This document shows, one piece after another, positions 1-16,919 of a stretch of DNA of 16,919 bases. How positions within the stretch are numbered: position 1 is the stretch's first letter; every line of letters begins with the position of its first letter. Source of the DNA: Octopus sinensis (lineage: Eukaryota); the NCBI RefSeq assembly GCF_006345805.1, contig NW_021824937.1, positions 1 through 16,919 of the forward strand, in the 5' to 3' direction. The translations under genes and the position numbers were made by a program. A model generated the notes under the pieces. The model made no database searches, was not told the DNA's origin, and saw only the letters and a program-made list of their open reading frames with translations.

Positions 1-3000
1 AAATCCTTTTTATATACTCTATTCTGGCTTTTTAAAATTTTCAGCAAGATTTGCGTAATTATAAGATCCCTACTCAGTTCTCCACGTGTGTGATATCATC
101 GAGCTCATTTTTCAGGGGATCAGTTTGAATATTCTGGATAATATGCGTTTTTAACAGCTCGTCTAAATCTTTTTATATACTCTATTCTGGCTTTTTAAAA
201 TTTTCAGCAAGATTTGCGTATTATAAAGATCCGTACTCAGTTCTCCACGTGTGTGATATCAATCGACTAATTTTTTCAGGGGATCAGTTTGAAATATTTC
301 TGGATATAATGCGCTTTTTACAGCTCGTCTAAATCTTTTTTATATACTCTATTCTGGCTTTTTAAAATTTTCAGCAAGATTTGCGTAATTATAAAGATCC
401 CTACTCAGTTCTCCACGTGTGTGATATCATCGAGCTCATTTTTTCAGGGGATCAGTTTGAAATATTTCTGGATAATATGCGCTTTTTACAGCTCGTCTAA
501 ATCCTTTTTATATACTCTATTCAGGCTTTAAAATTTTCATTAAAGATTTGCGTAATTATAAAGATCCCTACTCAGTTCTCCACGTGTGTGATATCAATCG
601 AGCTCATTTTTTCAGGGAATCAGTTTGAAATATTTCTGGATAATATGCGTTTTTTACAGCTCGTCTAAATCTTTTTTATATACTCTATTCTGGCTTTTTA
701 AAATTTTCAGCAAGATTTGCGTAATTATAAAGATCCCTACTCAGTTCTCCACGTATGTGATATCAATCGAGCTCATTTTTTCAGGGGATCAGTTTGAAAT
801 ATTTCTGGATAATATTCGCTTTTTACAGCTCGTCTAAATCTTTTTTATATCTCTGTTGGCTTTTTAAAATTTTCTGTCAAGATTTGCGTAATTATAAAGA
901 TCCCTTCTCAGTTCTCCACGTGTGTGATATCATCGAGCTAATTTTTTCAGGGGATCAGTTTTAATATTTCTGGATAATATCCGCTTTTACAGTCGTCTAA
1001 TCCTTTTTATTACTCTATTCTGGCTTTTTAAAATTTTCAGCAAGATTTGCGTAATTATAAAGGTCCCACTCAGTTCTCCACGGTGTGATATCATCGAGCT
1101 CATTTTTTCAGGGGATCAGTTTTAAATATTTGGATAATATGCGTTTTTTACAGCTCGTCTAATCTTTTTTATATACTCTATTCTGGCTTTTTAAATTTTC
1201 AGCAAGATTTGCATAATTATAAAGATCCCTACCAGTTCTCCACGTGTGTGAATCAATCGAGCTCATTTTTAAGGGGATCAGTTTGAAATATTTCTGGATA
1301 ATATTCGCTTTTTACAGCTCGTCTAAATCTTTTTTAATACTCTATTCTGGCTTTTTAAAATTTTCTGCAAGATTTGCGTAATTATAAAGATCCCTTCTCA
1401 GTTCTCCACGTGTGTGATATCAATCGAGCTAATTTTTTCAGGGGATCAGTTTTAAATATTTCTGGATATATCCGCTTTTTACAGCTCGTCTAAATCCTTT
1501 TTTAATACTCTATTCTGGCGTTTTAAAATTTTCAGCAAGATTTGCGTAATTTAAAGATCCCTACTCAGTTCTCTCCACGTGTGTGATATCAATCGAGCTC
1601 ATTTTTTCAGGGGATCAGTTTGAAATATTCTGGATAATATGCGTTTTTTACAGCTCGTCTAAATCTTTTTTATATACTCTATTCTTCGCTGCTTTTAAAA
1701 TTTCAGCAAGATTTGCATAATTATAAAGATCCCTACTCAGTTCTCCACGTGTGTGATATCAATCGAGATCATTTTTTAAGGGGATCAGTTTGATATTTCT
1801 GGATAATATGCGCTTTTTACAGCTCGTCTAAATCCTTTTTATATACTCTATTCTGGCTTTTTAAAATTTCAGCAAGATTTGCGTATTATAAAGATCCCTA
1901 CTCAGTTCTCCACGGGTATTATATCAATCGAGCTCATTTTTTCAGGGGATCATTTGAAATATTTCTGATATAATGCGCTTTTACACTCGTCTAAATCTTT
2001 TTTATATACTCTATTCTGGCTTTTTAAAATTTTCAGCAAGATTTGCGTAATTATAAAGGTCCCTACTCAGTTCTCCACGTGTGTGATATCAATCGAGCTC
2101 ATTTTTTCAGGGGATCAGTTTGAAATATTTCTGGATAATATGCACTTTTTACAGCTCGTCTAAATCCTTTTTTAATATATCTATTCTGGCGTTTAAAATT
2201 TTCAGCAAGATTTGCGTAATTATAAAGATCCTTCTCAGTTCTCCAAGTGGTGATATCAATCGAGCTCATTTTTTCAGGGGTCAGTTTGAAATATTTCTGG
2301 ATAATGCGCTTTTTCAGCTCGTTGAAATCCTTTTTTACTCTCTATTCTGGCTTTTTAAAATTTTCAGCAAGATTTGCGTAATTATAAAGATCCCTACTCA
2401 GTTCTCCACGTGTGTGATTCAATCGAGCTCATTTTTTCAGGGATCATGTTGAAATATTTCTGGATAATATGCGTTTTTTACAGCTCGTCTAAATCTTTTT
2501 TATATACCTATTCTGGCTTTTTAAAATTTCAGCAAGATTTGCATATTATAAAGATCCCTACTCAGTTCTCCACGTGTGATATCAATCGAGCTCATTTTTA
2601 AGGGGATCAGTTTGAAATATTTCTGGAAATATTCCGCTTTTTACAGCTCGTCTAAATCTTTTTATATACTCTATTCTGGCTTTTTAAAATTTTCTGCAAG
2701 ATTCGTAATATAAAGATCCCTTCTCATTCTCCACGTGTGTGATATCAATCGAGCTAATTTTTTCAGGGGATCAGTTGAAATATTTCTGGATAATATCCGC
2801 TTTTTACAGCTCGTCTAAATCCTTTTTATATACTCTATTCTGGTCTGGCTTTTTAAAATTTCAGCAAGATTGCGTAATTATAAAGGTCCCTACTCAGTTC
2901 TCCACGTGTGGTGATATCAATCAGCTATTTTTTCAGGGGATCAGTTTGAAATATTTCTGGATAATATGCGGTTTTTACAGCTCGTCTAAATCTTTTTATA

Positions 3001-6000
3001 TACTCTATTCTGGCTTTTTAAAATTTTCAGCAAGATTTGCATAATTATAAAGATCCCTACTCAGTTCTCCACGTGTGTGATATCAATCGAGCTCATTTTT
3101 TAAGGGGATCAGTTTGAAATATTTCTGGATAATATGCGCTTTTTACAGCTCGTCTAAATCCTTTTTATATACTCTATTCTGGCTTTTTAAAATTTTCAGC
3201 AAGATTTGCGTAATTATAAAGATCCCTACTCAGTTCTCCACGTGTATTATATCAATCGAGCTCATTTTTTCAGGGGATCAGTTTGAAATATTTCTGGATA
3301 TAATGCGCTTTTTACACTCGTCTAAATCTTTTTTATGTACTCTATTCTGGCTTTTTAAAATTTTCAGCAAGATTTGCGTAATTATAAAGGTCCCTACTCA
3401 GTTCTCCACGTGTGTGATATCAATCGAGCTCATTTTTTCAGGGGATCAGTTTGAAATATTTCTGGATAATATGCGCTTTTTACAGCTCGTCTAAATCCTT
3501 TTTATATACTCTATTCTGGCGTTTTAAAATTTTCAGCAAGATTTGCGTAATTATAAAGATCCCTTCTCAGTTCTCCAAGTGTGATATCAATCGAGCTCAT
3601 TTTTTCAGGGGATCAGTTTGAAATATTTCTGGATAATATGCGCTTTTTTCAGCTCGTTGAAATCCTTTTTATATACTCTATTCTGGCGTTTTAAAATTTT
3701 CAGCAAGATTTGCGTAATTATAAAGATCCCTACTCAGTTCTCCACGTGTGTGATATCAATCGAGCTCATTTTTTCAGGGGATCAGTTTGAAATATTTCTG
3801 GATAATATGCGCTTTTACACTCTCGTCTAAATCCTTTTTATATACTCTATTCTGGCTTTTTAAAATTTTCAGCAAGATTTGCTAATTATAAAGATCCCTA
3901 CTCAGTTCTCCACGTGTGTGATATCAATCGAGCTCATTTTTTCAGGGGATCAGTTTGAAATATTTCTGGATAATATGCGTTTTTTACAGCTCGTCTAAAT
4001 CTTTTTTATATACTCTATTCTGGCTTTTTAAAATTTTCAGCAAGATTTGCGTAATTATAAAGATCCGTACTCAGTTCTCCACGTGTGTGATATCAATCGA
4101 GCTAATTTTTTCAGGGGATCAGTTTGAAATATTTCTGGATATAATGCGCTTTTTACAGCTCGTCTAAATCTTTTTTATATACTCTATTCTGGCTTTTTAA
4201 AATTTTCAGCAAGATTTGCGTAATTATAAAGATCCCTACTCAGTTCCCACGTGTGTGATATCAATCGAGCTCATTTTTCAGGGGATCAGTTTGAAATATT
4301 TCTGGATAATATGCGCTTTTTACAGCTCGTCTAAATCCTTTTTATATACTCTAATTCTCAGGCGTTTTAAAATTTTCATTAAAGATTTGCGTAATTATAA
4401 AGATCCCTACTCAGTTCTCCACTGTGTGTGATATCAATCGAGCTCATTTTTTCAGGGGATCAGTTTGAAATTTTCTGGATAATATGCGCTTTTTACAGCT
4501 CGTCTAAATCCTTTTTATATACTCTATTCTGGCTTTTTAAAATTTTCAGCAAATTTGCGTAATTATAAAGATCCTACTCAGTTCTCCGTGTGTTATATAT
4601 CAATCGAGCATTTTTTCAGGGGATCAGTTGAAATATTTCTGGATAATATGCGCTTTTTACAGCTCGTCTAAATCCTTTTTATACTCTATTCTGGCTTTTT
4701 AAAATGTTTCAGCAAGATTGCGTAATTATAAAGATCCCTACTCAGTTCTCACGTGTTAATATCAATCGAGCTCATTTTTTCAGGGGATCAGTTTGAAATA
4801 TTTCTGGATAATATGCGCTTTTTACAGCTCGTCTAAATCCTTTTTATATACTCTATTCTGGCTTTTTAAAATTTTCAGCAAGATTTGCGTAATTATAAAG
4901 GTCCCTACTCAGTTCTCCACGTGTGTGATATCAATCGAGCTCATTTTTCAGGGGATCAGTTTGAAATATTTCTGGATAATATGCGTTTTTTACAGCTCGT
5001 CTAAATCTTTTTTATATACTCTATTCTGGCTTTTTAAAATTTTCAGCAAGATTTGCATAATTATAAAGATCCCTACTCAGTTCTCCACGTGTGTGATATC
5101 AATCGAGCTCATTTTTTCAGGGGATCAGTTTGAAATATTTCTGGATAATATGCGCTTTTTTCAGCTCGTTGAAATCCTTTTTATATACTCTATTCTGGCG
5201 TTTTAAAATTTTCAGCAAGATTTGCGTAATTATAAAGATCCCTACTCAGTTCTCCACGTGTGTGATATCAATCGAGCTCATTTTTTCAGGGGATCAGTTT
5301 GAAATATTTCTGGATAATATGCGCTTTTTACACCTCGTCTAAATCCTTTTTATATACTCTATTCTGGCTTTTTAAAATTTTCAGCAAGATTTGCGTAATT
5401 ATAAAGATCACTCAGTTCTCCACGTGTGTGATATCAATCGAGCTCATTTTTTCAGGGGATCAGTTTGAAATATTTCTGGATAATATGCGTTTTTTACAGC
5501 TCGTCTAAATCTTTTTATATACTCTATTCTGGCTTTTTAAAATTTTCAGCAAGATTTGCGTAATTATAAAGATCCGTACTCAGTTCTCCACGTGTGTGAT
5601 ATCAATCGAGCTAATTTTTTCAGAGATCAGTTTGAAATATTTCTGGATATAATGCGCTTTTACAGCTCGTCTAAATCTTTTTTATATACTATTCTGGCTT
5701 TTTAAAATTTTCAGCAAGATTTGCGTAATTATAAAGATCCCTACTCAGTTCTCCACGTGTGTGATATCAATCGAGCTCATTTTTTCAGGGGATCAGTTTG
5801 AAATATTTCTGGATAATATGCGCTTTTTACAGCTCGTCTAAATCTTTTTTATATACTCTATTCTGGCTTTTAAAATTTCAGCAAGATTTGCATAATTATA
5901 AGATCCTACTCAGTTCTCCACGTGTGTGATATCAATCGAGCTCATTTTTTCAGGGGATCAGTTTGAAATATTTCTGGATAATATGCGCTTTTTACAGCTC

Positions 6001-8665
6001 GTCTAAATCTTTTTTATATACTCTATTCTGGCTTTTTAAAATTTTCTGCAAGATTTGCGTAATTATAAAGATCCCTTCTCAGTTCTCCACGTGTGTGATA
6101 TCAATCGAGCTAATTTTTTCAGGGGATCAGTTTTAAATATTTCTGGATAATATGCGCTTTTTACAGCTCGTCTAAATCCTTTTTATATACTCTATTCTGG
6201 CTTTTTAAAATTTTCAGCAAGATTTGCGTAATTATAAAGATCCCTACTCAGTTCTCCACGTATGTGATATCAATCGAGCTCATTTTTTCAGGGGATCAGT
6301 TTGAAATATTTCTGGATATAATGCGCTTTTTACAGCTCGTCTAAATCTTTTTTATATTCTCTATTCTGGCTTTTTAAAATTTTCAGCAAGATTTGCGTAT
6401 TATAAAGATCCCTACTCAGTTCTCCACGTGTGTGATATCAATCGAGCTCATTTTTTTAGGGGATCAGTTTGAATATTTCTGGATATAATGCGCTTTTTAC
6501 AGCTCGTCTAAATCTTTTTTATATACTCTATTCTGGCTTTTTAAAATTTTCAGCAAGATTTGCGTAATTATAAAGATCCCTACTCAGTTCTCCACGTGTG
6601 TGATATCAATCGAGCTCATTTTTTCAGGGGATCAGTTTGAAATATTTCTGGATATAATGCGCTTTTTACAGAGCTCGTCTAAATCTTTTTTATATACTCT
6701 ATTCTGGCTTTTTAAATTTTCAGCAAGATTTGCGTAATTATAAAGATCCCTACTCAGTTCTCCACGTGTGTGATATCAATCGAGCTCATTTTTTCAGGGG
6801 ATCAGTTTGAAATATTTCTGGATAATATGCGCTTTTTACAGCTCTTCTAAATTCTTTTTATATACTCTATTCTGGCGTTTTAAAATTTTCATCAAGATTT
6901 GCGTAATTATAAAGATCCCTACTCAGTTCTCCACGTGTGTGATATCAATCGAGCTAATTTTTTCAGGGGATCAGTTTGTAATATTTCTGGATATAATGCG
7001 CTTTTTACAGCTCGTCTAAATCTTTTTTATATACTCTATTCTGGCTTTTTAAAATTTTCAGCAAGATTTGCGTAATTATAAAGATCCCTACTCAGTTCTC
7101 CACGTGTGTGATATCAATCGAGCTCATTTTTTCAGGGGATCAGTTTGAAATATTTCTGGATATAATGCGCTTTTTACAGCTCGTCTAAATCTTTTTTATA
7201 TACTCTATTCTGGCTTTTTAAAATTTTCAGCAAGATTTGCGTAATTATAAAGATCCCTACTCAGTTCTCCACGTGTGTGATATCAATCGAGCTCATTTTT
7301 TCAGGGATCAGTTTGAAATATTTCTGGATATAATGCGCTTTTTACAGCTCGTCTAAATCTTTTTTATATTCTCTATTCTGGCTTTTTAAAATTTTCAGCA
7401 AGATTTGCGTAATTATAAAGATCCCTACTCAGTTCTCCACGTGTGTGATATCAATAGAGCTCATTTTTTCAGGGGATCAGTTTGAAATATTTCTGGATAA
7501 TATGCGCTTTTTACAGCTCGTCTAAATCCTTTTTATATACTCTATTCTGGCGTTTTAAAATTTTCATCAAGATTTGCGTAATTATAAAGATCCCTACTCA
7601 GTTCTCCACGTGTGTGATATCAATCGAGCTAATTTTTTCAGGGGATCAGTTTGAAATATTTCTGGATATAATGCGCTTTTTACAGCTCGTCTAAATCTTT
7701 TTTATATACTCTATTCTGGCTTTTTAAAATTTTCAGCAAGATTTGCGTAATTATAAAAGATCCTACTCAGTTCTCCACGTGTGTGATATCAATCGAGCTC
7801 ATTTTTTCAGGGATCAGTTTGAATATTTCTGGATAATATGCGCTTTTACAGCTCGTCTAAATCCTTTTTATATACTCTATTCTGGCGTTTTAAAATTTTC
7901 AGCAAGATTTGCGTAATTATAAAGATCCCTTCTCAGTTCTCCACGTGTGTGATATCAATCGAGCTCATTTTTTCAGGGGATCAGTTTGAAATTTTTCTGG
8001 ATAATATGCGCTTTTTACAGCTCGTCTAAATCCTTTTTATATACTCTATTCTGGCGTTTTAAAATTTTCAGCAAGATTTGCGTAATTATAAGATCCCTAC
8101 TCAGTTCTCCACGTGTGTGATATCAATCGAGCTCATTTTTTTCAGGGGATCAGTTTGAAATATTTCTGGATAATATGCGCTTTTTACAGCTCGTCTAAAT
8201 CCTTTTTATATACTCTATTCTGGCTTTTTAAAATTTTCAGCAAGATTTGCGTAATTATAAAGATCCCTACTCAGTTCTCCACGTGTGTGATATCAATCGA
8301 GCTCATTTTTCAGGGGATCAGTTTGAAATATTTCTGGATAATATGCGTTTTTTACAGCTCGTCTAAATCTTTTTATATACTCTATTCTGGCTTTTTAAAA
8401 TTTTCAGCAAGATTTGCGTAATTATAAAGATCCCTACTCAGTTCTCCACGTGTGTGATATCAATCGAGCTCATTTTTTAAGGGATCAGTTTGAAATATTT
8501 CTGGATAATATGCGCTTTTTACAGCTCGTCTAAATCCTTTTTATATACTCTATTCTGGCGTTTTAAAATTTTCAGCAAGATTTGCGTAATTATAAAGATC
8601 CCTACTCATTTCTCCACGTGTGTGATATCAATCGAGCTCATTTTTTCAGAGGATCAGGTTGAATA
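1..8665. repeat. Tandem satellite DNA array, 169-bp monomer, 51 full copies plus one partial; open at the left edge of the window
   Basis: Consensus AAATCCTTTTTATATACTCTATTCTGGCTTTTTAAAATTTTCAGCAAGATTTGCGTAATTATAAAGATCCCTACTCAGTTCTCCACGTGTGTGATATCAATCGAGCTCATTTTTTCAGGGGATCAGTTTGAAATATTTCTGGATAATATGCGCTTTTTACAGCTCGTCT (169 bp; 57 G+C; T-rich plus strand). Monomers start at about 1, 165, 331, 499, 667 ... 8197, 8364, 8532, head to tail with no spacers. Similarity ends at ~8663-8665. Confidence 0.99.
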
Positions 8666-8682
8666 AATTGTAGCGTGCAAGC

Positions 8683-10139
8683 ATGGTCGTTTTTCCTGTG
8701 ATGCGCAAAAATGACAATCTTAAAGCAGAAAAAAGGGGTGCAAAGCACCCATCCCGAACAAAGGGGGATGTGGTAGAACCTGCTCAGGTAGCCCATGAGG
8801 ACGGCTGGCGTACCGTTGGGAAACCTAAACGTGTCGTTGCCGTCCAATTTCTAACAACTTAGGTTCTCGCAATTCGTCTTCGTAGATGGATCCGCCGTCG
8901 AAGAAGTCCGCTCGCGCGGGGGTAGAATTACCTTCGGCGTGGTGGCTAGACTAGAGGTCTTTCCCACCAGTGGAAAGGCCTCGGTCATAAGATCCTGGGA
9001 CGCTTGACTCTATACAGCCATCTGGCGGTATAGAGTCCTGAAGAGGGAGCCCACCCAATTCCTGCTTGGGTGGGAGAAGGAGGAGGACTTCTTCAGCTTT
9101 AAAGGAGAGCTGGAGAAGTCCAGCCCGTTCGGTCCTGGCATGCATCGGCTTGTCAGGATTGAACGAAAGGTAAGGCAGGTAAGAGTCCTGCTCCTCGGGG
9201 TCCCCCGGGACTTCGAGGATAATGATCTTTTAGGACACATACAGCGGGAGTACCCCAGTGCCTCTGCCCTTGCACGCTTCAAGCAGGGTAACCGCCCTCT
9301 TGAAGTGGTGGAGGTCATCCTAATCTGCGGTGGGGAGCATGGTCGCAAGACATGCCCCTCACCACCTATGGTGAGGCAGTGTGTCAACTGTGGTAAGTTA
9401 GGACACACTGCCAACTTCAAGGGTTGTCGTAAGTTCAAGGAGGCAACCCGACAGGTTGGTGGGGATGTAATCCCGAAGGTAGTCGCCCCCCTAGCGTCGC
9501 GGCCCCCGCACAACCACCGGCAAACAGGTAAAGCAGGCCACCTCCCAAGTCCGCTTGGGTGGCGAGGCCTGTGAAGCCTGCAAGCCACCGCACCCCTAGC
9601 GCCGCGGGCCCCAGCGCCAAAACTGGCAAACAGCAAAGCAGGCCAAAACCCCAAGTCCGCTTGCGTGGCGAAGCCTGTGATGCCTGCAAGCCACCGCACC
9701 CCAGCGTCGCGGCCCCCCGCTCCACAACCTGGCAAACAGGCAAAGCAGGCCAAACCTCCCAAGTCCGCTTGGGTGCGCGAAGCCTGCGAGCCCCATTGCT
9801 AGCGGGTCGGTACCGCCGCACGCCGACAAAGCCGTCGCCGACAAGCGGGTGGTGAAGCATCCGAGTCAGCTCAGATGCCGAAGCCTGCGATGCCCTCCGA
9901 GTCGGCTACAGGTGACACCGCCCAGTAAAAACCTGGGGGCGAAAAGGCTTCCCTCCATACGTGGAGATGCCATTGCACTCACCCCCTTGCGAGCGTGTGC
10001 CGCAGGACAGTGTTAGTCCTGCGGTGGAGTTATGTATACGCGTGATAACACTTTGTAGGAGATGAAGTGCAGTGTAGCGGATATGCTACGCCGCAACTAT
10101 GCCGAGGCCAAGAAGATCCTTGGCGAGGAGCCGATATGA
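8683..10139 (+). CDS. gag: LINE ORF1, gag-like nucleic-acid-binding protein (frameshifted in this sequence)
   Basis: ATG 8683/8701 gives MRKNDNLK...EDGWRTVGKPKR (WxxV-basic motif common in LINE ORF1). Central VLLLGVPRDFEDNDLLGHIQREYP...RFKQGNRPLEVVEV. Partial knuckle CGGEHGRKTC (9326-9355) and CVNCGKLGHTANFKGC (9380-9427). Then a P/K/A-rich repeat tail and a helical end ...MLRRNYAEAKKILGEEPI* with TGA at 10137-10139. Continuity needs several frameshifts, so the C-terminal boundary is inferred. Confidence 0.75.
9487..9790 (+). repeat. Internal tandem repeat in ORF1, ~106-108 bp x ~2.9
   Basis: Units start at ~9487, 9593 and 9699 (CCCC(T)AGCG..GCGG..CCCC...GGCAAACAG..AAAGCAGGCCA..CCCAAGTCCGCTTG.GTG.CGA.GCCTG). 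The reconstructed ~36-aa unit is approximately PSVAAPAPQPGKQAKQAKPPKSAWVAKPVKPASHRT. Confidence 0.92.
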
Positions 10140-12729
10140 TGCTCAACATCATTTCGGTGAACGCGCGCTCCTTGTCAGGCAAAGGAGACGCGATTCGGAG
10201 GATGTTGGCCACCACTAGTGCGGACATCCTGGTGGTCAACGAAACAAAGTAAAGCAGGATCGGTACGTAGTTGATGGCTACAACTGCTGTCACATACCCT
10301 GGAACAGGGGGTCAACATGTGGCACTGGAAACTAGCCTCTTCTACAAGCCGTACCTTGCTCTCCGGAGCTCAGGTTTATGTTCTTGTAGCCTATGTGAAT
10401 TCCTCAAGTGAGGATTCGCATAGGTAATTTAACATTTTACCTAGGGCGATGTATTCGAAGAACTTTACGGCGTGTTCTTGGCACGTACGGGAGTTCTTTG
10501 GAAAGCATCCGAAGGCGATGGTCGTTGGGGACCTGAATGCCAAGCCACCAAGAGCTCGGTTCAGGGTAACCAACGCGCATGGTTTGGCTCTAAAGACGCT
10601 GGTTGAAGACCTCGGGTTGGAATTCAGATCTTCAAGCGAGCCAAACCATCGATTCGCGGGGAGGACAAGACTGGCTAGGCCTTGCTCTGGTCAGCCCCGG
10701 GATGCTAAATTGGGTTAGTAACACAAATCTTATTGCCTGATATTGGGAGCGACCATCTGCCTCTATTGCACGAACTCCGTGAGCCAGTTCCTCAAAGGCC
10801 CCAGGATACTTTGACCTCCGGTCCGGTTCCTGGGCCAACCTGGAGAGGTTCATGGCCAGCAGGTTGCCCTCACTCTCTGGTGGGAATACCTGCGCCAACA
10901 TACGAGAGTTGGAGGCGTTAGATAATGGAATCAATGCTGCCCTGTCTGATTATATGCGAGATAATTTCAAACAGAACCCAGTACAGGGCCAGCACATTCC
11001 ACGCTCCCGTACCGGGTGCTAAATAATTAGATTCAAGCGCCGGCTGTCCAGACTGCGGACAAATGCGTCTACCAGGAGAACCGTGTCTGGTTTCGCGGCT
11101 GATCAGCCGGCTTCAAAGGGAGATCCGGAGGGAAATCCGTGAACACGAAGTTCACGGTGGGAGCGGGCCTGCCAAAGAGTGGACCCGCGCTTTCCGGACT
11201 TCTGGAAACAACTGAAGAGCCTGTCGGGGAGAGGGGAGGCAAAGTCAGTGCGCCTTAAGCGCTCTGATGGAACCCTCGCCTCGGACCCGGTTGAGTGTGG
11301 CTATATTTTCAACAACCACCTCAACAACATCTCGGGAACTGACGGAAGTCAGTTCGTAGAGACGTCGTCTTTTGTTACTATCCAGGAGGTATTGTTGGGA
11401 CAAGCGCTGCCAGCTGGACATATCAAGGTCGATGCAGGCGAAGTTTCCGAAAGGGAGATCCTGGCAGCGATCTCCCGAAGTAAGAACACTGCGGCGGGGC
11501 TAGATCGGATCCCTATGTCCATCTTCAAAAAGGCCCCGCCGTTGTTGATCACGGCCTTACAGGTTTTGTTTAGCGGGAGCTGCGACTTGGGATGATTCCT
11601 TCCAGGTGGAAAGTGGCTGAGGTAATCCTCATTGGAAAACCTGGGAAGCCTCATGAAGTCCCCGGGGGATATAGGCCCATTTCCTTGCTTCCCGCTATAT
11701 CTAAAATCCTAGAAAGGATCATGCACCGAAGGCTCCTGGAGGAGCTGACGGTGGTTGACGCCCTCCCGGAGTTCCAATGGGGCTTCAGGGAGGGTCGTTC
11801 ATGTGGAGACTGCTTGTGGAAGGTGTCTTCCGAAATGAAGAACGCCCTCCAGAAAGGGAGTGTGGTATGTTAGTTAGTCTTGACATAGAAAAGGCCTTCG
11901 ACTCGGTGTGGCACGACGGCCTGCGGAGTTCCCTCGCCACGTGTGGGGTTTCTCCGTGTCTAAGGCGCTGGCTGTCGGGGTTCCTCGAATCTCGCGGTCA
12001 GGTCGTGCGACACCAGGGGGTCTTTTCTAAAGTCGCAACAGTCCTTCGCGGGGTCCCTCAGGTTCTGTGCTGAGTCCCACACTGTTTAATATCTTTATGG
12101 CCTCTGCGCCTATGCCAGTCAATGCTCGTACTGAAATGGTGATCTATGCAGACGACATTATCCTCTGGGATCAGTCGATGAAACCAAATGTGCGTGTCGT
12201 AGGCTACAGGTTGCTGTGGATGAACTTGTAAACTGGTGTGGGAGTAGGGGTCTAAAGATGTGTGTGGACAAGTGCAGTGTCCTAAAGTCTGTAAAAGGAC
12301 GAGGGGTTACACTAATTTTATCCCTAGGTTATCGCTGGACGGGTCAGCGATCGCTGTAGTTGATCGGACGACTTACTTGGGCGTGGTCTTCAAGCAGTCA
12401 GGTAAGTTCGATGATCACATTGCACGTACTAAAATGCGTGCAATGCTGCGATTAGGCGCGTTGCGTGCTTTCCACTTGAGGAGAGGTGCCTGGTTCCGTG
12501 TGTTCAACGCCATGGTGTTACCCGTGTTAACTATGGCGTGCACGCTTGGCACTTCTGCGAGGACAGGGAGAAGTACGTTGACGCGCTTAAGAAAGTAAGA
12601 AGACGAGCCATCCCGGCTAGCCTATGGCTTAGGATGGCGTGATGAGCTCTCCAACGCCCAGGAATTGTCCTCAAAGGCCTCCCTGAGGTCCTAGAGAAGA
12701 TAATGACTGGGTGGCAGGTAAGACGGTAA
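10136..12729 (+). CDS. pol: LINE ORF2: apurinic-like endonuclease plus reverse transcriptase (more than 10 frameshifts in this sequence)
   Basis: APE motifs: MLNIISVNARSL, DILVVNETK, GDLNAK (10527-10544), GSDHLP (SDH 10748-10756). RT motifs: KNTAAGLDRI, WKVAEVILIGKPGK, YRPISLL (11670-11690), QWGFREGRS, LDIEKAFDSVWHDGL (11879-11923), GVPQ(G)SVLSPTLFNIF, YADD (12145-12156), YLGVVF, YGVHAW. The stop is uncertain: 12727-12729, or near 12840 if one more shift occurs. Confidence 0.93.
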
Positions 12730-12831
12730 GTCCTAACCTGTGGTTGTGTAGAGAGGCGAGCGTGTGTGCTGGACTGAAAAGGCAGGAATGCCGAAGGTCT
12801 CCTTATGTTACCTCACTAACAGCCTCTCTAA

Positions 12832-12850
12832 CTATTATTAAAATAAAAAT
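12832..12850 (+). other. Probable short A/T-rich 3' tail of the LINE, containing AATAAA
   Basis: CTATTATTAAAATAAAAAT lies between GC-richer LINE sequence and the first CRE-like codons. It is short and imperfect. Confidence 0.45.
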
Positions 12851-13475
12851 TTTCCTTCCTCTTCTGGCACTCTCCTTGACGATGAAGCGGTAAGGATCGG
12901 AGTCTCTCTGCGACTCGGACTAAGGCAATGTGTCCCGCACACGTGCCGCTGTGGCTGCACTGTTGACCCTTTCGGTCTGCACCCTTTATTGTGCAAGAGG
13001 AGTGCCGGACGTTTCCCGAGGCACTCTGCTATGCTGACATCATACGGAGGGCCCTCGACTCGGCGGATTTCCTTCGGTTCTCGAACCACCGGGTCTTGAC
13101 CGCGGAGACGGAAACGTCCTGACGGGATAACCCTTTTTCCCTTTGAAGGCGGAAAAGGCCTCGTATGGGATGCAACCTGCTGGGACACCTTTTCTGCTTC
13201 TCACTTAACTTCGTGTGCTCTGGAGGCTAATCTGCAGCTAAGAAGGCTGAAGATTTAAAGCTTTTTAAATATTCTGCCCTCTCGGAGAATTTTTCCGTGG
13301 TGCCGATCGCGCGGAGACGTCGGGTGCTCGGTCCAAAACTGAAAAGTTCCTTCGCAAGCTCGGAGCCAAAATCTCAATGCGCACCCTGGGGAGGCGGACT
13401 GGCTAATGCAAGGTTCTCGATTGCCATTATCCGGGGAACAGTTTGGCAATCCGCCAGGCTACATATCTACAATAA
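12851..13475 (+). mobile_element. 5'-truncated CRE-clade (RLE-type) non-LTR retrotransposon fragment: C-terminal CCHC zinc finger plus restriction-like endonuclease
   Basis: Manual translation across ~7 single-base shifts: FPSSSGTLLDDEAVRIGVSLRLGLRQCVPHTCRCGCTVDPFGLHPLLCKRSAGRFPRHSAM / DIIRRALDSA / GFPSVLEPPGLDRGDG / RPDGITLFPFEGGKGLVWDATCWDTFSASHLTSCALEA / SAAKKAEDLKLFKYSALSENFSVVPIA / ETSG / VLGP / KTEKFLRKLGAKISMRT / RFSIAIIRG / NSLAIRQATYLQ* (TAA 13473-13475). The motif order LRLG, CxC..H..C, RH, EP, RPDG (13115-13126), WD, AE..K..KY, ETxG, QR.S.AI.RGN is what I recall for CRE-type RLE domains. Confidence 0.86.
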
Positions 13476-13569
13476 CATAATATTGATAAATTCGATTGAT
13501 TTGGAAGGATTAATTTAGTGCATTCAGATGACACGTGCTTTATAGATCTAGTAATATATACCCAAATCT

Positions 13570-14997
13570 CTACTTTCTGGCATAGTTCAAGGAAAGTATA
13601 GTTTGTTCTATATCACTCCACATCGAAGATAACACCGACGAGAAATACTACGAAACACCCAGCCACCAAAATGTGTTCCATATGCTGGTTAGCCTAGTCT
13701 TGGGACGTGGAATGACTGTGTTCTTGCCAGCCGAGCACAACACAGTTCATTAAAGTCGTCAGTTGATGAGTCCACTGCATTCACAGACGGTCCACTAATG
13801 TAAAGAATCCGTTCCTCTCTGCCTTCTTATTAAATATCGTGATTTGAAAGACACGGTGGACTCCCAACCTCTTCTCTCCAAACTCGAGGTTAAGGACATC
13901 CTCATCCAAACATAGAGTAGACACCTCTTTAGAGATTCGACTGCTATTTTGAAGCAAGTCTATCATGTCCCCATCTTCAAAATCCACTGCAGAGAAAAAC
14001 AGACTACACTCTCCCCCGATTCTCTTCACTTCACTCGTCAGCTTTTTTATTTCTTCAATAGACTGAAGTAGTAATCTTTCCGAGGTTTGTCCATATACAC
14101 AAACACACACATTCTGTCCCAATGCGGCTGCTCTGAGTAGAATTGGTCCACAGAATATTCTCCGCACACCACAATGTCAAAGTTGTAATTATTTGGACGT
14201 ATATCCCTCCTTCCATTCAACTTGGTGTGAATAAAGTAATTATACTTGCCTTGAGAGGAAGACTATTTGTTGAGATTTGCTGGGAATTTATGATCTTTAT
14301 CGCCTCCCCGCATTCAGTAGAATTGACAAAACAGACTACTCTCACACACCCCTGAAAACTCATCACAATAATCCTCCCTTTAAAAATTCCACTTTCATTG
14401 ATAATTTTACAATTTCCATCACCTCCTTCTTTAACTGATCACTCTTGGTAGCCCACTCGGCTGAGAGGACCTGGGCTTTCTTATTAGACTGACACACTCC
14501 AGCCTACAGTGAGAGAACTAGAGTACATTCATCAAATCAGTAAGTGTTGTTATTCTTTCAACATTCTCGCATTGTCTTTCTATTTGTTCGACTAGAAAAC
14601 TGTCTTTCCTTCTCGAGTGATTTCAATTCGTCATCCTTGGATTGTTCTCGAGAGTGCAAGTCGTTGAGTTGTTGTTTTTATAATCTTTTAACATGAATAT
14701 TTATTAATACGATATTTTGCTGGTCAGTTCAGTCGAGTTCTTTCCTTTTTTGAGCAAATCTCCGTCTTCTCCTTGTTTATTGACTCGAATTGCAGCTCTA
14801 AATCTTCGAGCCGGCCTCGTATGTCCCACGGTTTCCTTTCTGCTGTTCTGCCTTTTGGTCGCTAGGTCTGATTTAAAAATAGATTTACTTGCTCCGTCTT
14901 TCGAAGTGTTGGATTAGTGCCTCTCGATGGCACAGTTGTTGATTTTTTAGTCTGAAATACAATAAATATATACTTCTATATGTCGACTTGTCCTCAT
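13570..14997 (-). CDS. Kinesin-14 (KIFC1/Ncd/Kar3 family)-derived protein with a degenerate, probably non-catalytic motor-homology domain; multi-exon with mini-introns, ~415-420 aa
   Basis: Spliced reconstruction: MRTSRHIE|TKKSTTVPSRGTNPTLRKTEQ|RPKGRTAERKPWDIRGRLEDLELQFESINKEKTEICSKK (WD motif 14808-14834; cf. recalled human KIFC1 KRPAWDLKGQL). Coiled coil follows (KQQLNDLHSREQSKDDELKSLEKERQF, LVEQIERQCENVERITTLTDLMN|AGVCQSNKKAQVLSAEWATKSDQLKKEVMEI). Motor-core elements appear in kinesin order: GCVRVVCFV (GNIRVFCRV), YNFDIVV (FSFDRVF), PILLRAAALGQNVCVCVYGQT (LVQSALDGYPVCIFAYGQT), SLFFSAVDFEDGDMIDLL (SFVASYVEIYNETVRDLL), HRVFQITI (HSVFQLQI), FTLVD (LSLVD), AVDSSLTTL (AINSSLSTL), KNTVIPRPKTRLTSI (KESHVPYRNSKLTYL), EQTILSLNYARK (SESLNSLRFASK). 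Several 1-bp shifts and one in-frame TAA (14678-14680) remain. Confidence 0.8.
14221..14249 (-). other. Mini-intron 6 (29 nt, GC-AG)
   Basis: AAG|GCAAGTATAATTACTTTATTCACACCAAG|TTG has the canonical GC-donor context AG|GCAAGT. Removal gives in-frame LPLK|LNGRRDIRPNNYNFDIV, whereas the nearby GT donor leads to a stop. Confidence 0.65.
14352..14392 (-). other. Probable intron 5 (41 nt; alternative donor at 14410 gives 59 nt) at the neck/motor boundary
   Basis: The acceptor GTTTTCAG precedes GGG TGT GTG AGA GTA (GCVRV). Either donor (GTGGAA or GTAAAA) joins in frame and removes TGA TGA. Confidence 0.55.
14504..14526 (-). other. Mini-intron 4 (23 nt, GT-AG)
   Basis: GTACTCTAGTTCTCTCACTGTAG. Removal resolves a stop and a frame change exactly (LTDLMN|AGVCQSNKK). 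Confidence 0.75.
14685..14710 (-). other. Mini-intron 3 (26 nt, GT-AG)
   Basis: GTATTAATAAATATTCATGTTAAAAG is an AT-rich island containing TAA TAA. Removal joins two coiled-coil-like frames but leaves one TAA just downstream. Confidence 0.55.
14862..14888 (-). other. Mini-intron 2 (27 nt, GT-AG)
   Basis: GTAAATCTATTTTTAAATCAGACCTAG. Removal deletes an in-frame TAG and keeps the frame into KPWDIRGRL. Confidence 0.7.
14952..14973 (-). other. Mini-intron 1 (22 nt, GT-AG)
   Basis: GTATATATTTATTGTATTTCAG. Removal joins ATG...GAA to ACT AAA in frame. An alternative upstream donor cannot be excluded. Confidence 0.6.
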
Positions 14998-15119
14998 AAC
15001 AAAACTCAAAATACACGATTGCGTAATTTATTACAATTATTAATAAAATTACAAACGTGCTAAATATATTAATCATTACATATTGCATAAGATTTTCCTT
15101 GAATAGAATTAAATATTTC

Positions 15120-15600
15120 CTTTCAAAGGTGTGTTGGAAAACTTTTACTAGTGATGCCCAGAAATAGGTGGGTCTACTCTTTATGTGTGTTGTCACGCTG
15201 TAAGTCTGCCTAATCTGATCCCTGGTTTGTATGAGAGAAATGATGATAGGATTAAACTGCCAGGATCTCTGATGATCGCAATTTTTGAAGGAAAAGGATT
15301 CTCAATTGTTTTTATACGGTCATTCAGGACGTAAGAGAACAGATTCGCGTTTGGCGCAAACCAAGAGGATGCTTGTCTCTTCCAATTATCACGTCTTTTT
15401 AGAGAAGAAAGGTAGGGCAGGTACAATATAAGACTTTGGACAGGGGAACATATAAGTTCACATCCATTGCCTCTGCGATAGAGACTTGATGAAGTCAAAC
15501 TGAAAATAACAAGGATCCATTGGCTTCTCATCAACACTCAACACTCCCATCTGAGTGAATACATCCTGATTCGTCTATAATGGAGACTCAACTAAATGCG
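15120..15600. other. Possible coding island of an unidentified host gene
   Basis: GC-richer block between very AT-rich flanks, with a 114-aa minus-strand ORF and long plus-strand frames. I recognised no motif and could not resolve the strand. Confidence 0.25.
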
Positions 15601-16919
15601 ACTAATTTAAAGTCCTTTCAGCCTCCTCACAATAATTGTTTGACACTTTTTACACAATTATTTGATAAGTGAATTGTCTACCTATCAATTAGTGTAATAA
15701 ATGGTGTATGTTTACTTTGTAAATTATCCCGTTAATATTTGTATTACAAATCACATGATTATTAATTTTAATTGGATTGTAACAAATTAAAAACTCGTCT
15801 ATAATCTTTAAACGCTATAAAATAATCGAAACTGATAAAATAAATTTTAATCCAAGTTTAATTGTACAGACACTTGGTCCCCATTCTGCGATACTCTCAT
15901 TCACATCTCCTGAAGGCCACAAAACCGAGAATTACAATCATTCGCCGTCATCATTCCTTTCTTCCTCCTCTGACATTCAAGACTTCCGACCACAAACATC
16001 GAAATTCCTGAAAGAGTCGTCTCCTTATCGCTCGAAGGAATATGGATGCAGCGAATCTTCTTGGCAAAGACAGAGGATCTCGCTTACAAACTTGTGCGGA
16101 TGCTCCTGCATGGTTTGTGAATCGAGCTTTCTTGGCAACTATCAATCACTTTTATGTAATCTGATTATATTGTTGTATGTAATCTGACGGACAAATAATT
16201 ATCACGTGTACTATGGTCTGATCAATCAAAATCTTTGATGGAAAATAAAGAACGAAAAGAACATGAAGTACTCAGTTTATTTAAGTTTATATAGGCAAAT
16301 AAATAGTTAAGCATTAAAATAATATTTAATTAATCTTATATCCATCAGTTTAATAAAATAAATTATTACATTCACGTTGCTTCCTGTGTGTTATGAAAAG
16401 TAGCAAACTCGATGGTCCCTTTTGGTACTTTATTTCAGATTTTGGAGTTTCGTTCGAAGATTCACTATCATCGTTATTCACATTCGTGTTATTCAGCGAG
16501 GATCTCGTAAAACGATGACTTACGTTCAGGGACTTGATAAAAATTAGACTATGAAACAAATTGCGAAGCTCTTCAAAAAGTCTCGATTTGTTTCACACGT
16601 ATAGAAACTAGCGACTGGTGCTGGTGTCACCAATTGACAAATATTGCCTCGTCCTTCATTTTTGGGCGACCACCGCGATCGTCTTAAGGCTTTGTGTAGA
16701 ACATAATATGCCACTGCCGATCAAATTCAAACACAACGGATTCTGATCTTTTAATTTCTAATATCTCGTTTCTTGTTTATTTTTTAATTTTGTTTATTTC
16801 TTCTTAATTACTTTTTTGACCGTCCGGGCTCTCCTTTGTACTGAAAGCTCAACTTTTAAGGATTGCCACCCTTAAGTAACATTTTTTCTTGTTTGTTATA
16901 ACTATTTATCTGCTATATA

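Follow-up and report, generated by a model that had tools for sequence, protein, structure and literature searches.

In several proteins that carry a kinesin-derived domain, including KIF26A/B, Costal2/KIF7 and plant KAC, the motifs of the nucleotide site are degenerate and the domain serves binding or scaffolding and not motility. These proteins belong to other kinesin families or to a plant clade of kinesin-14, have a motor fold of full length, and are conserved in many species. To our knowledge, non-catalytic partner heads of kinesin-14 have been found only in budding yeasts, where their origin is obscure and sequence similarity to motors has been lost. The motor-homology domain of Vik1 and Cik1 is described in PMC4338441 as binding microtubules without the elements for adenosine triphosphate (ATP) binding and hydrolysis. 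Here we describe a gene or gene copy on the minus strand of contig NW_021824937.1 (16,919 nucleotides (nt), all of which were analyzed and are referred to as the window), which a preliminary description had presented as a kinesin-14 gene lacking the P-loop, switch I and switch II. Judging from alignment scores, the gene is derived from kinesin-14A of the KIFC1 type, with the tail-stalk junction best preserved and the motor extremely diverged. We read it as a non-catalytic, KIFC1-derived motor-homology gene that is either intact or was inactivated very recently, the quality of the sequence preventing a decision on its integrity, and we give this reading a probability of about one half.

The ancestry of the gene was assessed with our own protein-to-DNA aligner, which takes frameshifts and introns into account, using as references the kinesin-14 sequences of the PDB and the KIFC1-like protein P0122. 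The tail and stalk aligned to P0122 with a score of 121, against 33.8±4.0 for shuffles (z about 22), PKGRTAERKPWDIRGRLEDLELQF pairing with PMGKGGKRPVWDMKGRLEDMEALF, and the N-terminal half of the motor reached 66 against 35.9±4.1 for shuffled DNA (z about 7). We also aligned the frame-corrected conceptual motor of 259 residues to four PDB kinesin-14 motors (5wdh, 1f9t, 4gkr and 1cz7) with hhalign. The alignments were colinear from beta1 to alpha6 over 207-248 columns, with 26% identity, E values of 2.4-2.8e-4 and probabilities of 41-44%, and the score of 35.1 exceeded that of shuffled queries (15.5±3.3, z about 6). The kinesin-14 origin proposed in the preliminary description is borne out by these scores and can be narrowed to the KIFC1 type.

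The domain order, with a basic N-terminal tail, a coiled-coil stalk, a neck and a C-terminal motor, is that of kinesin-14A (KIFC1/Ncd). The 45 residues of the tail through KPWDIRG, which extend into exon 3, include 13 K/R, 4 D/E and 11 S/T. The segment KPWDIRGRLEDLE begins at 14834 (KPWDIRGRL), after this basic, Ser/Thr-rich tail and before the stalk. The junction motif P-x-WD-x-[KR]-G-x-L-x-D, which we take to be typical of animal KIFC1, is present here, ERKPWDIRGRLEDLE aligning to KRPVWDMKGRLEDME of P0122, and the tail motif is about 50% identical to that of a distant KIFC1. The stalk that follows is about 117-125 residues long and heptad-patterned, with a hydrophobic contrast at the a/d positions of 0.38 against 0.27±0.05 for shuffles (P = 0.017). 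From 14351 onward, the neck and beta1 read GCVRVVCFVNS where kinesin-14s have GN[IV]RV[FY]CR[IV]RP; 5 of the 11 positions are identical and the R-x-R-P part is lost. The alignment by hhalign pairs GCVRVVC with GNIRVFC.

Profile searches gave a weaker signal. The preliminary description had proposed a search with the kinesin motor model PF00225; in readings of the region that use each base once, this model scored 13.2-18 bits, below its gathering cut-off of 29.3, and had no match in one reading. In the same readings, PF16796 (Microtub_bd) scored 17-27 bits over the N-terminal half of the motor, with a cut-off of 27, a match that does not discriminate, since ordinary kinesin-14s such as P0122 match this model too. 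No Pfam match was found for separate single-frame fragments. A hidden Markov model of the four PDB kinesin-14s, run against all 1146 fragments of the window, placed two kinesin-like fragments at the top with E values of only 0.25 and 5.2. In a word-seeded search of the conceptual proteins against 5.8 billion proteins, nothing was found at E<=0.01, and the only three proteins at E<=10 (E about 4) were all kinesin-14s with Kinesin and Microtub_bd domains. One could propose that the kinesin resemblance arose by chance in a non-coding region. The empty Pfam result on separate fragments, the remaining Pfam matches at or below the gathering threshold, and the lack of significance of the C-terminal half of the motor would be in keeping with this, but the z-scores of the tail and stalk, of the N-terminal motor half and of the hhalign comparison effectively refute it, and the right domain order, phase-consistent introns and open reading frame (ORF) signal stand against it as well.

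The gene spans an ATG at 14997 and a stop at 13572-13570, with a spliced length of about 1240 nt (1239 nt of coding sequence (CDS)). The GC content is 42.3% in the exons, 27.4% in the introns and 34.5% in the flank. The mini-introns noted earlier were recovered as six introns of 22-59 nt (Table 1), which are AT-rich and bounded by GT-AG or GC-AG; five of the six connect open frames with zero corrections. For intron 6, an alternative GT donor 4 nt downstream would lead to the wrong phase. The segments YNFDIVV and ALGQNVCVCVYGQT are located in exon 7. Splicing alone does not give an ORF, and at least 7 single-base corrections are needed between the ATG and the stop. The spliced minus-strand reading of the preliminary description is therefore upheld for its six plausible introns and its domain order but not as a clean frame. 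Exon 3 ends in a lesion that can be read in two ways, as a -1 shift in its A6 run (14751-14746) or as a TGA in frame (14726-14724). The stalk has two more breaks, one in the A5 run at 14679-14675, where one frame has TAA 14680-14678, and one in the T4 run at 14599-14596, where dropping one T connects KERQF with LVEQIERQ. No continuous frame was obtained with the ciliate (table 6) or the Euplotes (table 10) genetic code, all three stops occurring in every frame. A free search for GT-AG introns of 15-80 nt produced a 'clean' ORF only by removing conserved parts such as KPWDIRGRL.

Table 1 Positions of the KIFC1-derived gene, its parts and its neighbors in the window.
Feature	Positions	Strand	Description
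Entire gene or gene copy, derived from kinesin-14A (KIFC1)	13570..14997	-	7 exons, 6 mini-introns; from three-frame reading and frameshift-aware alignment to P0122
Exons 1-2	14997-14974, 14951-14889	-	Start of basic, Ser/Thr-rich tail
Introns 1-2	14973-14952 (22 nt), 14888-14862 (27 nt)	-	GT-AG; frame kept without correction
Exon 3	14861..14711	-	RPKGRTAERKPWDIRGRLEDLELQFESINKEKTEI..., KIFC1 tail-stalk junction motif; aligns to PMGKGGKRPVWDMKGRLEDMEALF of P0122
Intron 3	14710-14685 (26 nt)	-	
Exon 4	14684-14527	-	Coiled-coil stalk
Intron 4	14526-14504 (23 nt)	-	
Exon 5	14503-14411	-	Coiled-coil stalk
Intron 5	14410-14352 (59 nt)	-	Phase consistent without correction
Exon 6	14351-14250	-	Neck and beta1: GCVRVVCFVNSTECGEAIKIINSQQISTNSLPLK
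Intron 6	14249-14221 (29 nt)	-	Candidate GC-AG intron, donor AAG/GCAAGT (exon/intron); phase fits without correction
131-codon uninterrupted frame	14176..13784	-	alpha1/beta3 (ALGQNVCVCVYGQT), truncated P-loop, alpha2b, beta4 (DMIDLL), degenerate switch I, beta7 (FFTLVD)
P-loop remnant	14092-14069	-	GQTSERLL (for GQTGSGKT); the next 11-17 residues of Kar3 and KIFC1 have no counterpart
Out-of-frame relic of ancestral GKT-x-T codons	14067..14081	-	GKITT; overlaps in-frame ERLLL; SGKITT if one G is restored
Switch I position	13873-13856	-	KRLGVH (for SSRSH), followed by RVFQITI
Switch II position	13798-13764	-	LVD (13798-13790), -1 break (TGA 13783-13781 in the old frame), SVNAVDSS; L11 shortened
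C-terminal motor remnant	13763..13570	-	HVP, -1 break near 13705-13691, K-TRLT, WWLG, TAG 13650-13648, EQTILSLNYARK, stop 13572-13570
169-bp satellite array	1..8663	.	51.8 copies, 93% matches, 33% GC
Non-LTR (long terminal repeat) retrotransposon, a long interspersed nuclear element (LINE)	8665..13480	+	Reverse transcriptase (RT) about 40% identical to metazoan jockey/CR1-like RTs

The motor-like region runs from GCVRV to the stop over 750 nt or 250 codons and ends in SLNYARK*, in agreement with the size of about 250 residues given in the preliminary description. The remnants of the three nucleotide motifs quoted there (GQTSERLL, KRLGVH and LVD with SVNAVDSS) were also found where it had placed them. 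The patterns GxxxxGK[ST], NxxSSRSH and DxxGxE are all absent, and no single-base correction brings any of them back, because the loss consists of substitutions and deletions that lie largely inside one uninterrupted frame of 131 codons. At the switch I position, hhalign places EKRLGV-H, whereas MAFFT instead pairs the downstream NKKAERN with NERSSRS; SSRSH is found in neither alignment. In place of the DLAGSE of switch II, the sequence reads DRL* in frame and DPSVNA after a one-base correction. The 131-codon frame is about 50 residues shorter than canonical motors over an equal span, and the P-loop end with alpha2a/L5, beta5/L8, and L9 or beta6 are missing from it. On these grounds, a motor without the Walker-A Lys/Thr, SSRSH and DxxGxE would be unable to bind or hydrolyze ATP as a kinesin does.

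The P-loop retains a trace of its former frame. Reading the out-of-frame GKITT relic raises the score of PF16796 from 21.8 to 27.2 bits and that of PF00225 from 13.2 to 18 bits. This suggests that the P-loop codons were probably disrupted by a small frameshift and a compensating deletion, which sum to 33 nt, and not by residue-by-residue substitution. Restoring one G gives GQTSGKITT, which is one Gly short, has Ile for the Mg-binding Thr and meets a TGA eight codons on; the sequence GQTSGKI foreseen for this correction in the preliminary description is thus still non-canonical.

The quality of the assembly can be gauged from the LINE that neighbors the gene and from the satellite array beyond it. 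When the RT of the LINE was compared with three homologues, five frameshifts were found in about 1050 nt, all five being 1-nt deletions, and none of about 350 codons was an in-frame stop. Such a pattern resembles the error of a deletion-biased long-read assembly; a decayed element should show indels of mixed sizes and nonsense codons. For the LINE, 19 corrections were needed in 3461 nt (0.55% per nt), or 22 (0.64%) in a model that allows deletions only. Private variants of the satellite comprised 58 indels (39 deletions and 19 insertions) against 58 substitutions, a ratio that looks abnormal for real satellite variation and resembles unpolished long-read sequence. The 7 corrections in the 1239 nt of the kinesin CDS amount to 0.56% per nt. 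Since this density equals that of the LINE, most frame breaks in the kinesin gene need no biological cause, and they are probably assembly errors.

Such an assembly raises the question of whether this is an ordinary catalytic kinesin-14 whose motifs are missing only as artefacts of poor long-read sequence. An assembly with roughly 0.5% single-base deletions would allow for this, and one restored G does bring the P-loop nearer to the canonical form and the Pfam scores up. We nevertheless consider it very improbable: after correction, the P-loop is still short of one Gly, has no Mg-binding Thr and meets a TGA 8 codons on; KRLGVH in place of SSRSH and DPSVNA in place of DLAGSE are the product of substitutions; about 50 residues are missing between beta3 and beta7 inside a single open frame; and the RT of the LINE has no large deletions relative to its homologues.

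We then considered whether the divergence of the motor accumulated with or without translation. The kinesin region needed 7 frame corrections, against 17.8±2.7 for shuffles (minimum 12); the antisense strand needed 12 and the flank 15-16. In a neutral simulation (200 runs), a back-translated KIFC1 motor was allowed to decay by substitutions only, down to the retention observed here. Reaching the observed divergence took about 0.44 substitutions per site and produced 13.6±3.4 stops per 335 codons (minimum 7), while at most 3 stops are seen in the motor. An open run of at least 131 codons occurred in 3.5% of the neutral runs (P = 0.035, indels excluded). Within the 131-codon frame there are at least three multi-residue deletions, all of which are in frame. 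Preservation is higher in the tail motif than in the motor, whereas uniform decay of a normal KIFC1 would be expected to leave the opposite pattern. Because of the few stops relative to the neutral expectation, the in-frame deletions and the better-kept tail, these results support that most of the divergence accumulated while translation was maintained, under selection for an open frame; that the present copy is alive does not follow. The preliminary description had invoked selection in place of random decay, and the simulation and the ORF test side with it for the history of the gene; with one or two nonsense codons, the copy itself may be dead.

The distribution of the losses was examined over residues that are invariant across the four reference kinesin-14 motors, the core excluding the Lys that was patched over the TAG codon. 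Retention was 15/55 in the core, 6/23 in the nucleotide site and 9/26 in the L11-alpha4-L12-alpha5 face, and neither the nucleotide site (Fisher p = 1.0) nor the microtubule face (p = 0.60) differed from the core. The erosion of the motor is uniform and not aimed at catalytic residues. The earlier statement that exactly the three catalytic elements had been lost from a preserved scaffold is contradicted by these counts and by the disappearance of about 80 scaffold residues. The claim that the motor elements are recognizable in order fared better in part: the colinear hhalign alignment agrees with it, but the C-terminal half taken alone scores no better than shuffles.

Uniform erosion is also what a long-dead pseudogene of a normal catalytic KIFC1 would show, its motif loss and shrinkage being the result of neutral decay only. 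The deletion of several structural elements, the statistically unrecognizable C-terminal half, and the failure to find a fold prediction or an orthologue would fit such an origin, too. We regard it as quite unlikely given that neutral decay predicts many more stops than are present, that 7 frame corrections suffice where shuffled sequence needs about 18, that the multi-residue deletions in the 131-codon frame all preserve the frame, that identity to a distant KIFC1 is still about 50% in the tail motif, and that the introns and splice sites are preserved.

Several observations weigh against our reading of the locus as a motor-homology gene that is intact or only just inactivated. In the deletions-only model, the kinesin gene needs 12 corrections (0.97%) compared with 0.64% for the LINE, which points to extra lesions. 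Every path across intron 3 meets the stalk TGA at 14726-14724 or the TAA at 14680-14678. The in-frame TAG at 13650-13648 is flanked on either side by homologous sequence that keeps its frame. The profile alignment places this TAG exactly at a Lys that is invariant in kinesin-14s, and it looks like a change of AAG to TAG; it is a single-base nonsense change for which a deletion-type assembly error offers no explanation. Substitution errors could account for one of this TAG and the stalk TGA/TAA, and probably not for both. One or two nonsense codons are left after assembly errors are discounted, and the copy may be dead. About 80 structural residues are absent from the motor, including part of alpha1, the P-loop end with alpha2a/L5, beta5/L8, L9 or beta6, and L11. 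Uniform erosion is likewise not what a loss directed at catalysis would leave. The conceptual protein used for hhalign was built with frame choices that were partly steered by kinesin likeness; the neutral simulation depends on frame choices as well and starts from an assumed ancestor with about 55% identity to canonical kinesin-14s. The locus sits in the company of a LINE and an 8.6-kb satellite, a setting that looks heterochromatic.

Searches for relatives and fold predictions count on the same side. No orthologue or paralogue was found in protein and metagenome searches. An exhaustive phmmer search of the 131-residue frame against 1.84 billion representative proteins found no orthologue and one spurious match, P0121. 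This 1422-residue protein was rejected as a relative, being made of 13 near-identical tandem repeats whose weak matches are summed in the score (repeat inflation). Metagenome scans gave 0 matches to an exact pattern across the P-loop, and a tblastn-confirmed search gave 0 relatives. AlphaFold2 did not yield a confident fold for the 131-residue frame, with a predicted local distance difference test (pLDDT) value of 51.5 from the single sequence and 49.5 from a 4-row alignment with three KIFC1 rows. The single-sequence model has its elements in the order alpha1-beta3-alpha2-beta4-alpha3-beta6-beta7, and the 4-row model is without beta4, both at low confidence. Foldseek against the PDB returned nothing at E<=0.001 and no kinesin. 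The structural match suggested as a check in the preliminary description was accordingly not obtained, with pLDDT values of about 50-52.

These lesions lead to a second history, in which the locus is a recently inactivated, unprocessed duplicate of an already divergent, non-catalytic KIFC1-like gene elsewhere in the genome and is decaying beside the LINE and the satellite. The TAG at 13650-13648 and the TGA at 14726 or TAA at 14680 are unlike the deletion-type error of the LINE, the deletions-only cost of 12 exceeds the any-type cost of 7, the setting looks heterochromatic, and the P-loop codons left out of frame suggest that a frameshift and a deletion occurred fairly recently. Like an unprocessed pseudogene, the locus has frame breaks, one or two nonsense codons, LINE and satellite neighbors and no detected orthologue. 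It differs from one in that the lesion density is not above that of the LINE, whose RT frameshifts resemble assembly errors, and in that stops are far below the neutral expectation. The splice sites and the contrast in composition between exons and introns are intact, the 131-codon frame has stayed open, and no parent copy was found in the protein and metagenome searches, which did not extend to the host genome. We consider this history, the main rival to our reading, possible but doubtful. If the locus is only a recently broken copy, it illustrates that gene models from an assembly with about 0.5% single-base deletions need polishing before pseudogenes or motif losses are claimed.

The remainder of the window consists of repeats and anonymous sequence. 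The satellite array is AT-rich, with monomers of 162-173 bp, and Tandem Repeats Finder additionally called a period of 337 bp. The LINE contains a zinc-knuckle ORF1, an endonuclease and the RT, the zinc-knuckle and endonuclease matches being weak. Its GC content of 50-60% compares with a host background of about 33%. The LINE and the kinesin gene are convergent, with about 90 nt between the 3' end of the former and the stop codon of the latter. Because all frameshifts in its RT are 1-nt deletions and stops are lacking there, the LINE may in reality be intact and young. Its 5' part holds a 106-bp tandem repeat at 9484-9786 (2.8 copies, 85% matches), which lies in a Pro/Ala/Lys-rich stretch downstream of the zinc knuckle. 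Upstream of the kinesin gene, positions 15000-16919 are AT-rich and contain several open frames of 60-114 codons on both strands; no Pfam match was found for the ORFs in this interval, and nothing recognizable was seen there. An Rfam scan of the whole window gave no match. The relatives of the LINE and the KIFC1-type tail make a metazoan host probable, and introns of 22-59 nt point to a compact, mini-intron lineage.

Under the reading that we prefer, that of a non-catalytic motor-homology gene, the locus would be related to the animal kinesin-14A gene KIFC1 as a paralogue, or as an orthologue that has changed greatly, and its host would probably be a metazoan whose introns are very short. The gene would have kept the basic tail, the junction motif in the form P-WD-x-[KR]-G-x-L-E-D-x-E and a shortened coiled-coil stalk, while its C-terminal motor shrank to about 250 residues and lost the nucleotide motifs. 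For most of its history it would have encoded a translated, non-catalytic 'motor-homology' protein. The stalk may dimerize, with itself or with a catalytic kinesin-14, and by analogy with Vik1/Cik1 the protein may bind microtubules through its tail, and perhaps its head, without motor activity. The apparent frameshifts would be mostly assembly errors, and the residual nonsense codons could indicate that the copy was recently inactivated.

Compared with KIFC1/HSET/Ncd, the gene shares the tail, the junction motif, the stalk, a G-x-[IV]-RV neck and a motor that ends just after SLRFA (here SLNYARK*), and it aligns significantly to P0122 and to PDB entries 5wdh, 1f9t, 4gkr and 1cz7. It differs in the absence of a functional P-loop, switch I and switch II, in a motor of about 250 residues compared with about 335, and in a stalk of about 125 residues compared with about 190 in P0122. 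Its motor is 26% identical to canonical kinesin-14s, whereas these are 48-49% identical among themselves, only about 29% of the invariant residues are kept, and the Pfam Kinesin model remains below threshold. From KIF26A/B, Costal2/KIF7 and KAC it is set apart by the fact that no orthologue is detectable for the present sequence.

Vik1 and Cik1 carry, C-terminal to a coiled coil, a motor-homology domain that lacks the elements for ATP binding and hydrolysis (PMC4338441), and the present gene has this layout as well. In both cases, the similarity to kinesin motors is eroded over the whole domain and not at the catalytic sites alone. Vik1 and Cik1 differ in being fungal, and experiment and crystal structure have established that they form a heterodimer with Kar3 and bind microtubules. 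The present gene, for its part, can still be traced to KIFC1 by sequence, has lost large elements such as beta5/L8, and may be damaged in this copy. An origin independent of fungal Vik1/Cik1 is suggested by the tail motif, which is of the KIFC1 type, and by the host, which is probably a metazoan. A stronger proposal, built on this analogy, would be that an animal mini-intron lineage independently evolved from KIFC1 a translated, ATP-blind subunit with a head of about 250 residues, which pairs with catalytic KIFC1 as Vik1 and Cik1 pair with Kar3; we consider this unlikely as it stands. If true, no such partner would have been known outside fungi before, its kinesin ancestry would still be readable, and a dead head derived from KIFC1 in an animal would mean that a non-catalytic head is a solution that can arise repeatedly. 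Such a protein would also be a natural intermediate in which to find out what the motor core needs for microtubule binding and communication between heads without ATP.

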